DNA of 64,000 nt from Bigelowiella natans CCMP2755 (taxonomy: Eukaryota > Protista > Cercozoa). The translations under genes and the position numbers were made by a program. This document shows positions 165-62,240 of this stretch, one piece after another. The notes below the pieces were generated by a model. The model was given only the letters and a program-made list of their open reading frames with translations, made no database searches and was not told the DNA's origin. Every line of letters begins with the position of its first letter. The stretch's first letter is position 1. The DNA lies in NCBI GenBank assembly GCA_000320545.1, contig ADNK01003276.1:1-64000 (forward strand). The letters run 5' to 3'.

Positions 165-1057
165 CCCTGACACAAATGGCCTTGGAGAAAACTCCAACCC
201 TGACTTCCCTGATTTGCAATTTCAATTGACACTTTCTGCCAGAGGTTGCATCTTTTTCGACAGGTGCAGTTGAACAAGCGAAAAGACTCATCTGTGGCAA
301 ATTCTTTCATTGTGATGTGTTTTCGCCCATTTTGGGGCTGCAGTCAGCAGTTTGTTGTTGGTTGTCAATTTGGGAGTTCACAAAAAGTTGTCTCAAAGAT
401 GCAGTTCTGCACCTCCATTTCTGATCCGGAGTCAATTTTTGATGACAAAACGGGTTTTCATTTGGCATGCATCGCATGGTCTGGTTTTGTTCAATGTTTC
501 CAGTTTTTTGGATGACGTCAATTTTGGCAATTGGTGGTGGTGGTTTCAAGGCAATTGCTTTGTTCATGCGTGCATTGCGTTGTGCATCGAGTTCGTTGTT
601 CATTGTGACCAACAAAAAAAGCAATTGCCTTGAAACCACCACCACCAATTGCCAAAATTGACGTCATCCAAAAAACTGGAAACATTGAACAAAACCAGAC
701 CATGCGATGCATGCCAAATGAAAACCCGTTTTGTCATCAAAAATTGACTCCGGATCAGAAATCAACGCACAGCATGTTTTGTTTGTTTGGCGCATTTTGG
801 CACATTGATTTGAGATGAGCAACTCGATGACTCCTTTTGCACCTCTTCCATGCTGGCATGCATGGGATGTGCGTTGACAACGTGGCCAACAAAGCACGTG
901 TGTTGTGGCGACTGCAGAATTCGCATGATGTGCAGGAATGTGCGGCATCTGGTGCGGCAGTGTCTCCAGAAAGATTGCCAATGACCAGAGTGATGAAATG
1001 AATCGTGTTCGCATCATCATCGCAAACATGAAAACATGCATGGCTTCTTTGACGTTT
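165..1057. other. Subtelomeric tract with no TpA dinucleotide, TG/CA-rich
   Basis: Manual scan finds no TA between 163-164 and 1058-1059. Degenerate telomere units CCCTGA occur at about 165-212. Confidence 0.93.
417..762. repeat. Perfect inverted repeat with 145-bp arms (417-561 and 618-762) and a 56-bp spacer
   Basis: Positions pair with i+j=1179. ORFs 467+ and 712- both begin with the same peptide MHRMVWFCSMFPVFWMTSILAIGGGGFKAIA. Confidence 0.95.
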
Positions 1058-4000
1058 TAGTTCGAAGTGCTGGAGGGTTCCTGCGGTGCAGACTCTGGCT
1101 CCTTCTCTGCATTGACGGACTCTTCAATGGTTTCTGGTTCGGTTTGTTCCTCCATGGATGCATTTGCTAATGCCAGTTTCAACACCTCTACAGCTGTTTC
1201 ACCTATCGAATCTTTGACTGAAGGAGAAAGTGGGCGCGGTCCAACGATCTATTTGTGTTTATGAGTGTCTTTGTATTCGCATATACTTTGCATGTACAAG
1301 TGTGAATTTGCTTATTTGTATTTGTTTAGATGAGCTCAGTGTGTGATGACATGCTGTGCAGTGAGGTGCTGTTTCGTGTGCTGGTTTCTTATTTGCATGT
1401 GTGAATAGCTTGAGATTTCACATTACAAGTCAAGAAACAACTACACCTACACACAAAACACACATACACACACACCTGCAATCGTACTACTCGAAAATTA
1501 AATTACATACCATATTGAGGAGTTGCTTCATGAAAACCCTACTTTGCATCATGAGAAGAGACTTTGACCCGAGAATAATTTCTACCACTGGCTCACTTAC
1601 TTCTCCTGCTGCTGTATCATTTGATTTTTGTTTTCCGGATGGCAACCTTAAATTACAACAGCAGCAGCAAGTGTTGATTGTTCTACCCATCCGTGTATTG
1701 AGCACCGAATAAGAAAAATGTAGATTTAAGTTTCTATAATACATATGTATATATATATATATATATATATATATATATATAGAGAGAGAGAGAGAGAGAG
1801 ATTTATTATATGTAATATTGTCTTCGAGTACTACTATTCTCCTCCTCCTTTACATGTCGAAGCGCAAAGTGCTTCCTGCCATAATTGGCGACGGTAATGT
1901 CTCCTTGAGTCGGGATCTTAGTTCTCGTAGCATCTTGTACACTTCTGCTCTATCATCCTTCTCAATCCTGAGGGAGAGGGGGAAAAATAACCAACCGACA
2001 AGGGGAGTGCTACTATATAACTATGTATTCACCACAACCTCCACCTCCTTCTCTATGTTGTTGGTTATAGGCTACTACTACTACTACTACTACTACTACT
2101 ACTATTACTGCTACAGCTGACATATCGCTAATGAAGAATAATATCTCCAAATGGACTAAATATTAGAACTACATAGGAATGAGGATCATGATCATGATGT
2201 TTGATAGTGAAGGTTAGTAGTTTAAAACGAAGCCAATATCCAATGTCACAGCTCATAACGGGGGGGAAAGGGGGGGGGGGAAATCTACCATGGTTGATAC
2301 TGCATCTTATTTACGCTGCGGCGTGCAGAATTCTAACACCGTTCTACTTACCTTCTGGTTCTTTGTCTCTTTCCTAATATCTCTCTCACTACCACGCTGT
2401 TCATCTTCCTCCTCCTCCTCCTCCTCCTCTTACTACTGCTAATTACTACTTTTACTAATACATCACTCACTCACCATGCTATTAATCCACGTTTGAGTCT
2501 AGATATCAAATATCTCCGCGACATGGGTTTCATCACCTATAGTAAGTAGTAGCAGTCAGTAGTAGTAGCAGCAATTAGTAGTACTACAAAGTATTGCTGA
2601 TGATAGAGAGAAGTGTAGATGAAACAACGGTACAACAGTACAAGGAACCAGCATGTGGAAATTGCTTACCGAATCTAGTAAGCAAGTAACACAGATACTA
2701 GGATTTTCCCGTTAATTATACACACACACACACACACACATATATATATATATATATATATATATATATATATATATATATATATATATATATATATATA
2801 TATATATATAATACATTATATAATCTAAAATTAAAAAAAGAATACGAATGACATGATCTATCCCCTCCTTCGGAGATAATGTGTATTATCTACATCACAT
2901 ATGCCTATGATTATCCAAACATCACTTGGTAGTGTACTACTACTATCACTACCTGTATAGCAATGACCACTGGATCTCCAGAAGTAAATAATTCCCCTAA
3001 ATTGGCAGTTGGTTGTGCTGATTCTTCTTCGCTTCTAAGAAGCGTGCTCCTTTTACCAATTACTTGAATGTTCATCATTGCGCCACAACACCTGTTGTTA
3101 CTATGACTGATATGCTAATAAGAAACGGAAGGAATTGTTTCTCCTCCTAGTAACTATATAATAGAGAGATATCATTATCATTAGGGTTGGTTGGCTATTC
3201 ACAAGTCCGGGCATCGAATTACTTAGCTAACACTGCTACTACAACAACAACAACAACAACTACTACTACTACTACACTACTACTAGTGCATACACACTGG
3301 TATGTATCATCACCCTGTGCTGTCAAAACCGGACCCCAACATTGTAAAGTTGGCTGTGATATCACGGTTCCATAGCATTGACTCTGTTTGGTATAATTGG
3401 CCAAGATCATAGCCAAGCTCTTCCTGAGTTTTGTAATGAGTAATATATGTCATTTGTCATCATCACAAATTATGGTGATTACACGTAAACACACACACAC
3501 ACACACACGCACATGCGCACACAAATACATAGATAACTGTATCTAATGAAGAAAACGAGGATGGATGCATCATTATAAATGGTACTACTTGCTACTGGTA
3601 CTACCACTACTACAACTACGACTACTACTACATTTATCTATCTAGCAGCAGGTAGTAGAAGAACACAAAGAAGAAGAAGAAGGATCACCAATCAGCAACG
3701 AAAGATAGATTAAAGCAACTAGAATAGAAATTGAAATGATCGATGCAAGAAAGAAGAAGGTAGCAAGAAAGAAGAAGGTAGCATCACTGGATACACAGCT
3801 ATATTAATATCATTGCAACACGATCAACATAATAATATAAATTAATTGATTGATTTTGGTTCTTGACACCATGCCAGTTTTGGAAGGGATTTGGTCCAAT
3901 GGTTCTCCCTCTCCTACGACTGCCTTTGGAATTCCCTGAGAGAAAGAAAGGGAGAGAGAGAGAGAGAGAGAGAGAGAGAGAGAGAGAGAGATGGGAGTAT

Positions 4001-5055
4001 CAAATTTATCATCAGCACCAACGAGCGAAGATGTATAATTCAACATATGGCTACTACTTAACGAGCGAAGATGTATAATTCAACATATGGCTACTACTTA
4101 AAAAAGATAAATATCCCTAATCATGCTATTATTTCTGAAATTCAAGGAGATGTAGATTTCCAACATTTTCCTATGTGTGTACGTAACTGCCGTGGCGGCA
4201 TACATCGTGTTTAATTGTTAGATGCTAAGTTCCTACTCCTCTTACTACTTCTACTACTACTACTACTGCTACTTCTACTACAGAAGTACCACATACAGGG
4301 ATACCATCAGTTAGTAATATTACCAGCGGATGTCCCATAGGAATTCTTTCTCTCAGCATTTTGTAACCCCTTTTTATCAACAGAGCTCCGATTGCAACCC
4401 CTGATGATGATGATGATGATGATGATGATGATGATGATGGCACTGCCGTTTGGACTTCCCGTATACTAAACATTTGATTGTATATGGCATCCTCCATAAC
4501 AAACTCAATTATCCTTCTTCGTATGCTACGTAGGTCATGTGTAGTCTGGAAAATGAACGATATATCCTTTTAAATCTTATGTTCCTTAAACCACCACCGT
4601 ATCCATTCTGTTTAGTTGTATACCCTCAATCAACCTGATGACTGTGCAATAAGCTCTCCTACTTTGACAGGTTTTGCGACTGAAATAGTAGGCTCGGGAT
4701 CCCTCTTCTTTCTCGGTCCTAAGAACGACGACGCGACGGACATCACAATCATCATCTCAACGCATAAACCAGGCCGAGACCTTACCATACTCATCACAGC
4801 AAGCACCATGCCAACTTTAGGGGAAAAGAGATCATGTTTAAAAAGTGAATAGAAGCTCTGTGATACCGACATCATGTATGTAGAGCATAATTATTCTGAC
4901 GTTTCCTCTAATGCTAGAGAGATAAGTCGCACACCGAATGCTATGTTGGTTTTTGGATCCTGAAAACCGAGCAAGACCACACAAATGGCTGGTGCCAATA
5001 GACCCCACAGCAAGCAGGGAGAATAAGATCGAGTCCCAGTTCTTGGATGTAACAT
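1057..5055 (-). CDS. Multi-exon hypothetical protein with N-terminal signal-peptide-like segment
   Basis: Putative first exon MLHPRTGTRSYSPCLLWGLLAPAICVVLLGF. GT-AG bounded exons include GVAIGALLIKRGYKMLRERIPMGHPL, GIPKAVVGEGEPLDQIPSKTG, IEKDDRAEVYKMLRELRSRLKETLP and LPSGKQ..QLLNM. Last exon 1248-1057 reads IVGPRPLS..PSSTSN*. No family recognised. Confidence 0.65.
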
Positions 5056-61800: not shown

Positions 61801-61934
61801 GAATAGGTAGCAGTGGCGAACTTAGTTATTCACAGCAGCGCCGACAGCAGCAGAAGAAGCACAGAGTAGGTCTGAAGACCAAGCAAAAGAGTAGTAGCGC
61901 TGCGTGTAATAACGTGTATGCTGGTCTCACCTAA
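58825..61934 (+). CDS. Low-complexity Ser/Thr/Lys-rich hypothetical protein with short coiled coil
   Basis: In-frame spliced exons MGAAAGCTRGG..TK|GQADRVRQ..CK|RQGSDG..ALERK|LAVAEAWNKRLLKENRSL.. (exon of about 400 codons). Terminal ORF ends at 61934; the last junction is unresolved. Confidence 0.6.
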
Positions 61935-62074
61935 TAGTGAGTTATGCCACCTGCGTCATCTAAGACTTTTCAAAGTTATATGATAATCGAAGCACCTATG
62001 CCGACAAACGGGGTTCATAGTGCATGCACACTCCAATAACTTAGTATCTTATAGAATCTGGTGACTATTCACCA

Positions 62075-62240
62075 CAGCAAGCTAGCAAGCTGCTAGTACA
62101 CCGCAAATAACAGCAAGGTGCATGCATCTCGTGCATGATGATGTCTACATGTTTCATTTCGTGCGTGTCGTTTAGCGTCCGTCAGTAGAGCGCTCCTAGC
62201 CACATCATATATGTCATCACACAGGACATACATGTACGCC
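62075..62240. other. Short TG/CA-enriched core of a convergent spacer
   Basis: GCTAGCAAGCTGCTAG..GTGCATGCATCTCGTGCATG..CGTGCGTGTCG. Weaker version of the other convergent tracts. Confidence 0.55.

Follow-up and report, generated by a model that had tools for sequence, protein, structure and literature searches.

We analysed a window of 64,000 nucleotides from the cercozoan Bigelowiella natans CCMP2755 (GenBank assembly GCA_000320545.1, contig ADNK01003276.1, positions 1 to 64,000), which begins in a telomere and contains tracts that have lost much or all of the dinucleotide TpA. A preliminary description, made from the letters alone, had ascribed these tracts to an undescribed T:A to C:G hypermutation at TpA, confined to the subtelomere and to the spacers where convergent genes end. 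By our reading the 13 genes of positions 1058–64000 alternate in strand, giving six head-to-head and six tail-to-tail spacers and no tandem pair. The telomere end, the tail-to-tail (convergent) spacers and the dispersed repeats inside them are given below, unstranded unless a strand is named; footprint means local depletion of TpA with gain of CpA and TpG, and MITE a miniature inverted-repeat transposable element.

1–157, + strand: telomere, (CCCTAA)n, with TpA intact and presumably renewed by telomerase
164–1057: TpA-free subtelomeric tract, single copy apart from an internal palindrome
417–762: inverted repeat with 148-nt arms (417–564 and 615–762) that differ by one mismatch
13991–15462: convergent spacer with the strongest internal footprint, bounded by two RNA-supported 3′ ends and almost without RNA
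14326–15097: MITE of family A, about 770 bp, with CAC...GTG ends, terminal inverted repeats and a 2-bp target duplication (GT here)
24031–25369: convergent spacer with a moderate footprint, beginning after the LepA/GUF1 stop
24465–25044: family C, an older dispersed repeat with about 30 matches, mostly at 65–87% identity, its ends not defined
34661–34909: convergent spacer without a footprint (a counter-example), with an intact (TA)n array at 34663–34702
43751–44358: convergent spacer with a mild footprint and no recognisable repeat (one 41-bp match only)
53521–55029: convergent spacer with a strong footprint and 22 CTAG
54097–54522: MITE of family B, about 425 bp, with CACAAG...CTTGTG ends and a target duplication (TA here)
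61935–62299: short convergent spacer, single copy, with a borderline footprint (p=0.08)

Positions 165–1057 contain no TA at all where 69.3 are expected, and the lowest count in 2,000 shuffles of this segment was 48. The TA-free gap here (895 nt, 163–1058) is the longest in the window, and the next five, of 165–236 nt, sit at 14.1–15.0 and 24.8–25.0 kb. Observed and expected counts were 19 and 92.6 at 14050–15450, 48 and 88.9 at 24100–25300, and 52 and 82.9 at 53600–54900; in these three tracts TG and CA each stood at about 1.5–1.9 times expectation, bearing out the surge that had been claimed. The 43.8 kb spacer holds 23 TA against 33 expected, the 34.8 kb spacer 17 against 20 and the 62.1 kb spacer 15 against 14. 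Because transitions leave the number of pyrimidine–purine steps unchanged, we chose the share of these steps that is TA outside CTAG as the measure of the footprint, with repeats and microsatellites masked. This share is 0.39 in introns and 0.33 in the pooled head-to-head spacers; it is 0.04–0.07 in the flanks at 14 kb, 0.08–0.12 in the 54 kb spacer, 0.17–0.19 in the 24 kb spacer and 0.21 in the 43.8 kb spacer (p=0.001). At 62.1 kb it is 0.24, and the 34.8 kb spacer shows no footprint (0.36, p=0.67). The collapse of TpA is therefore real for the subtelomere and four convergent spacers, mildly so at 43.8 kb, borderline at 62.1 kb and wrong at 34.8 kb, where a weak trace had been reported. The head-to-head spacers had been called TA-rich and said to carry (TA)n arrays; they proved ordinary (TA observed/expected 0.83–1.08), and the long (TA)n arrays sit in introns. 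That the footprint favours the 3′ flanks of genes and the subtelomere rather than promoters was upheld.

The convergent orientation of the genes, also part of the preliminary description, is supported by several kinds of evidence. RNA at the 14 kb spacer shows the + strand gene ending near 13990 and the poly(A) site of the − strand gene at 15463, so that the tract fills the gap between two transcript ends; RNA depth inside is mostly below 0.6, and read-through RNA was not seen there in what is a shallow, 3′-biased library. Gene searches, made exon by exon and unspliced, placed LepA on the + strand (exon 23674–24030, best match Amorphochlora amoebiformis, 88%) and DNase II on the − strand. A self-trained splice model, correct on 35 of 38 confident held-out pieces, agreed and gave the right sign on 11 of 12 sides across both kinds of spacer. 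A k-mer strand classifier was dropped, being about 50% correct on held-out pieces. At the telomere end, 164–1057 is the 3′ flank of a − strand gene, and the first TA lies inside the stop codon of that gene (1057–1059).

Each of the three long spacers (14, 24 and 54 kb) contains a dispersed repeat, a feature absent from the preliminary description, and two of these are clear MITEs: families A and B are short and non-coding, have terminal inverted repeats and target duplications, and occur in many dispersed copies. Family A has about 50 genomic matches at 75–94% identity. Among 16 of its copies, about 40 columns are split between CA and TG, and TA is almost gone, persisting mainly at two CTAG sites (3/16 and 5/12 copies). 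Family B is younger, with 156 candidate copies, and among 20 of these, five TA sites are each split between TA, TG and CA, with 16–60% change per context versus about 1% elsewhere. The three-way split fixes the direction of change, TA being ancestral, and the star-like tree of the family indicates that most TA changes are independent events. The MITE copies thus show both the direction of mutation and its specificity for TpA, and the excess of TA to TG or CA change expected from an alignment of repeat copies is present.

These comparisons refute an account without any mutator, in which the tracts would be intrinsically TA-poor repeats, or TA loss a by-product of CpG decay or of higher GC content. 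The three long tracts do hold repeat families, and tract GC is 44–50% versus 39% for the window, as such an account would have it. However, the footprint is common to three unrelated families and to unique flanks, the copies show three states at TA sites, TA is absent from a single-copy stretch of 893 nt, and the process has been seen de novo (below). CpG is not erased from the tracts while TG and CA go up, and in family B it is kept in 517 of 540 cells, in agreement with the earlier argument against decay of methylated CpG. We regard a mutator-free origin as extremely improbable. CpG transitions make up about 11% of cells in family A (L003–L022 alignment) versus 2.4% in family B, which may reflect methylation of cytosine. 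Two DNA sequencing runs differed at the tracts only in ways resembling paralogous MITE copies, and few TpA targets remain there. Families A and B resemble non-autonomous CMC (CACTA/Mirage-type) DNA transposons: their ends read CAC...GTG, and they have terminal inverted repeats as well as 2-bp target duplications. No transposase was linked to them.

The process itself is already known in B. natans. Mettrop et al. (bioRxiv 10.64898/2026.01.13.699255) followed 15 mutation-accumulation lines and found 231 substitutions in integrated giant virus and virophage regions, 230 of them T:A to C:G and nearly all at TpA, with no transversions and no ApA targets among the 230. The rate there was about 1000 times background, in some lines only, and the hot spots were a silent, single-copy 186-kb integrated giant virus and a virophage region. 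The same preprint reports 124 TpA-poor clusters genome-wide and TpA-poor coding sequences enriched for transposase and reverse transcriptase domains; it proposes an ADAT2-like deaminase, Bn78255, and reads the process as antiviral immunity. It states that all changes are at TpA, yet its table lists four at ApT (three ATG and one ATT). MITEs, telomeres, CTAG, the context of trinucleotides and the orientation of genes go unmentioned in its main text.

With these de novo changes and the MITE copies, the targeted T:A to C:G hypermutation at TpA that had been postulated does exist, but it is not an undescribed system; nor is it confined to convergent termination zones, since its measured hot spots are viral and virophage DNA. 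In families A and B, change of TpA to TpG or CpA lies far above other changes, and the tracts combine local TpA depletion with CpA and TpG gain, which matches the process of Mettrop et al. in species, in mutation and in its link to transposon-like DNA; the context order drawn from their table also fits survival in our tracts. An open reading frame at locus L047 of the same genome agrees with Bigna1 protein 92390 of B. natans at 360/364 positions and with a cluster-mate transcript at 371/371. Their study differs in scope: it dealt with viral inserts, with coding sequences and with clusters no shorter than 3 kb. Our analysis adds the target range, the 3′-flank preference with its counter-examples, and the context order.

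The tracts are probably the long-term footprint of this mutator acting on silent chromatin. The mutator would be aimed at transcriptionally silent DNA, probably marked by H3K9me3/H3K27me3, and not at termination as such; in a gene-dense genome such chromatin may comprise integrated viruses, transposons, subtelomeres and the spacers behind gene 3′ ends. MITEs would pile up in 3′ spacers, and promoters and gene bodies would escape. A single combined H3K9me3 and H3K27me3 state covers transposons and repressed genes in B. natans (bioRxiv 10.1101/2025.03.17.643675), and silent chromatin appears to be the simplest common denominator of the targets.

The same mutator might instead be guided to gene 3′ ends by termination, through read-through RNA, R-loops or convergent double-stranded RNA, with transposons merely sharing the address. 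Within the window, five of the six convergent spacers tend in the expected direction, against none of the head-to-head spacers (TG+CA observed/expected, p=0.04); the repeat-free 43.8 kb spacer bears a footprint; the subtelomeric tract is single copy and ends at a stop codon; and the 14 kb tract occupies the gap between two transcript ends. We extended the strand calls to 52 repeat loci elsewhere in the genome, picked by repeat content and not at random. Of the 63 flanks that could be scored here, 53 point toward the 3′ end of a gene and 10 away from it (p=3e-8), and 16 loci are convergent, four tandem or intronic and none divergent; the splice model can miscall non-genic DNA, and long open reading frames point the same way. 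The 3′-flank pattern therefore extends beyond the window, in the form of a positional preference of these repeats. Yet flanks that face away are no less depleted (7 versus 15 TA per 400 bp, n=10), there is no gradient inside gene 3′ ends on average, and little RNA is found in the 14 kb spacer. The convergent spacers around loci L028, L033 and L037, with young MITE copies and normal flanks, are untouched like that at 34.8 kb, so convergence alone does not suffice. The hot spots that have been measured lie in a silent virus and in a virophage region. Placement at termination regions and telomeres is thus preferred but neither sufficient nor exclusive, and guidance by termination seems to us unlikely.

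Visible repeats do not wholly explain the footprint either. The targets in the cores of the 14, 24 and 54 kb tracts are foreign or mobile DNA, while the subtelomeric tract and the 43.8 and 62 kb spacers are single copy. Loss depends on the local neighbourhood, and its places are repeats, the telomere end and gene 3′ flanks. Around family A, TA observed/expected is 0.24 at the edge and reaches about 0.8 some 600–700 bp away; in family B, the TA surviving per copy correlates with TA in the flanks (rho 0.62, p=0.003). The family B copy in the window keeps all five polymorphic TA sites inside flanks at 0.08–0.12, and it must have been inserted after the 54 kb spacer was mutated rather than having triggered the change, an order of events that counts in favour of guidance by termination. 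The unit of attack may therefore be the neighbourhood, which would span from a few hundred bases up to kilobases and be hit episodically.

CTAG, not mentioned in the preliminary description, accounts for 39 of the 142 TAs that survive in the tracts versus 115 of about 5,400 elsewhere in the window; its observed/expected ratio is 1.38 in TG/CA-rich windows and about 0.5 in genes. From the table of Mettrop et al. we calculated relative rates of 1 for ATA, 0.68 for TTA, 0.43 for GTA, 0.25 for CTA and 0.014 for ATG, with rough opportunity counts from only 3.5 kb of viral region. These rates rank CTAG, CTAC and GTAC slowest, and the same three words survive best (observed/expected 1.38, 0.42 and 0.36). 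ApT is a second target: in family A, 133 of about 700 AT cells have become GT or AC, versus about 5% for TT, and AA steps are nearly stable in the MITEs. The alignments lent no support to an origin of CTAG from TTAG or CTAA, the aligned partners being CTGG and CCAG, and CTAG is not among the methylation motifs of chlorarachniophyte giant viruses. On scaffold 10 in Table S2 of the preprint, T>C at CTA occurs 17 times versus three times for A>G at TAG (p=0.003), other contexts being balanced. An attempt to place the capsid locus on that scaffold by mutation contexts gave a 3/3 match only, compatible with chance.

These preferences suggest a candidate enzyme, a DNA adenine deaminase of the TadA/ADAT2 kind, which would convert A in TpA to hypoxanthine (read as G) at a rate that falls with the next base in the order T > A > C > G; A before T would be a weak second target, and CTAG, slow on both strands, would be lost last. 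We rate this chemistry at about even chances. Sequence matches to the deaminase family occur at six places in the genome. TadA/ADAT2, ADAR and AID/APOBEC enzymes likewise deaminate foreign nucleic acid in a context-specific manner with a preference for 5′ T or U, and differ in that no eukaryotic member has been shown to act on chromosomal DNA at such a scale. The context favoured by ADAR, a 3′ G, is the slowest one in the B. natans tracts.

T to C and A to G on opposite strands are indistinguishable from sequence, and a TET/JBP-like enzyme might oxidise thymine at TpA as a mark of silencing or termination (5-hydroxymethyluracil (5hmU), 5-formyluracil or base J), mispairing with G then yielding T to C. 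The addresses are alike: dinoflagellate 5hmU marks transposons with a reported preference for TA and TC steps (PMC11572971), and kinetoplastid base J lies at telomeres and termination regions (PMC4150806, PMC10057400). These are marks, however, and neither such an enzyme nor such a base has been shown in B. natans; the literature gave no link between them and Bigelowiella. A genome search for Tet_JBP found no match, but its positive control also matched nowhere, and exons are short. Both 5hmU and J pair with A, and we know of no hypermutation attributed to either. We give this chemistry little credence.

We hold a further alternative to be just as improbable, in which an error-prone polymerase of the Y family (Pol eta/iota type) would fill in repair patches within silent DNA and insert G opposite T, most readily at TpA. 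TpA is a known Pol eta hot spot, the genome has at least six Y-family loci, and one mutation-accumulation line contains three same-strand pairs of de novo changes spaced by 2–10 bp (permutation p=0.046), a hint of short patches and no more. Clustering is absent beyond 12 bp, though, and the spectrum, free of transversions and ApA targets and matched by the near stability of AA steps in the MITEs, is too pure; such purity favours a base-specific enzyme over a polymerase.

Several observations sit uneasily with a mutator of silent chromatin. Silence at the tracts rests on low RNA depth in one spacer, that at 14 kb. The footprint spans a whole transcribed 3′ untranslated region at the telomere and enters a transcribed short gene at 15463–16090 (TA observed/expected 0.54), and a long terminal repeat (LTR) retrotransposon piece at locus L022 keeps its TA beside a depleted MITE. 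CTAG stands above expectation, an excess that slow loss alone cannot produce, and the overall rank agreement between context rate and survival is weak (rho −0.58, p=0.08, with the 3.5-kb opportunity counts). The deaminase is a candidate, no enzyme being tied to the process. A doubtful but more radical possibility is that a termination- or RNA-linked signal aims the mutator at 3′ flanks and telomere ends without foreign DNA, CTAG being a functional or protected word older than the mutator, as CTAG abounds in both tail-to-tail spacers at one Amorphochlora locus that show no TG/CA excess.

Fungal repeat-induced point mutation likewise consists of hypermutation by transitions at one dinucleotide, which leaves scars in repeats and spills over into their flanks. 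It is cytosine-based, changes CpA to TpA and is triggered by homology in the sexual cycle, whereas the B. natans change runs in the reverse direction, hits single-copy DNA (164–1057 and the virus of the preprint) and occurs in clonal culture.

If MITEs, single-copy 3′ spacers and subtelomeres are rewritten as well, the process shapes the silent DNA of this genome in general, and the choice between foreign DNA, silent chromatin and a 3′-end signal becomes testable with existing chromatin immunoprecipitation sequencing and annotation. Candidate enzymes can be assayed against the fingerprint that the context order provides (3′ T > A > C > G, with weak activity at ApT and sparing of CTAG), and the MITE families offer an internal clock for dating mutation episodes.

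Some further features accompany the tracts. All 30 TG/CA steps are identical between the arms of the palindrome at 417–762, which suggests that it formed or was homogenised after TA loss; this single-copy element lies 260 bp from the telomere and is predicted to form an extruded hairpin (−196 kcal/mol as DNA). At L021:6–119, CCCTAA is changed to CCCTGA in 4 of 19 telomere units, with one other variant, and positions 164–212 of the window, just inside the telomere, hold relics similar to these units. Alternating TG, CA and TA steps at 15235–15310 resemble a converted (TA)n array. The LTR retrotransposon piece at L022:2697–3812 is a retropepsin-like open reading frame with normal TA that adjoins a TA-free family A copy, and a family B MITE lies just behind the 3′ end of the gene at L030:2774–3406, which encodes the heptad repeats of the large subunit of RNA polymerase II.

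In Amorphochlora, for which a further search yielded no additional loci, the one locus compared has no such footprint: its repeats keep TA, and its interstitial telomere arrays lack CCCTGA variants. These arrays are long and degenerate (L064:6244–7199, 14405–14774 and 23143–23357), one of them within a called LepA gene. The tail-to-tail spacers of the same locus (L064:13200–14800 and L064:17600–18800) contain 18 and 13 CTAG, versus mostly 0–1 per 400 bp elsewhere, often as TCTAGA and with a short repeat in common; coming from one locus, this enrichment is only a lead.

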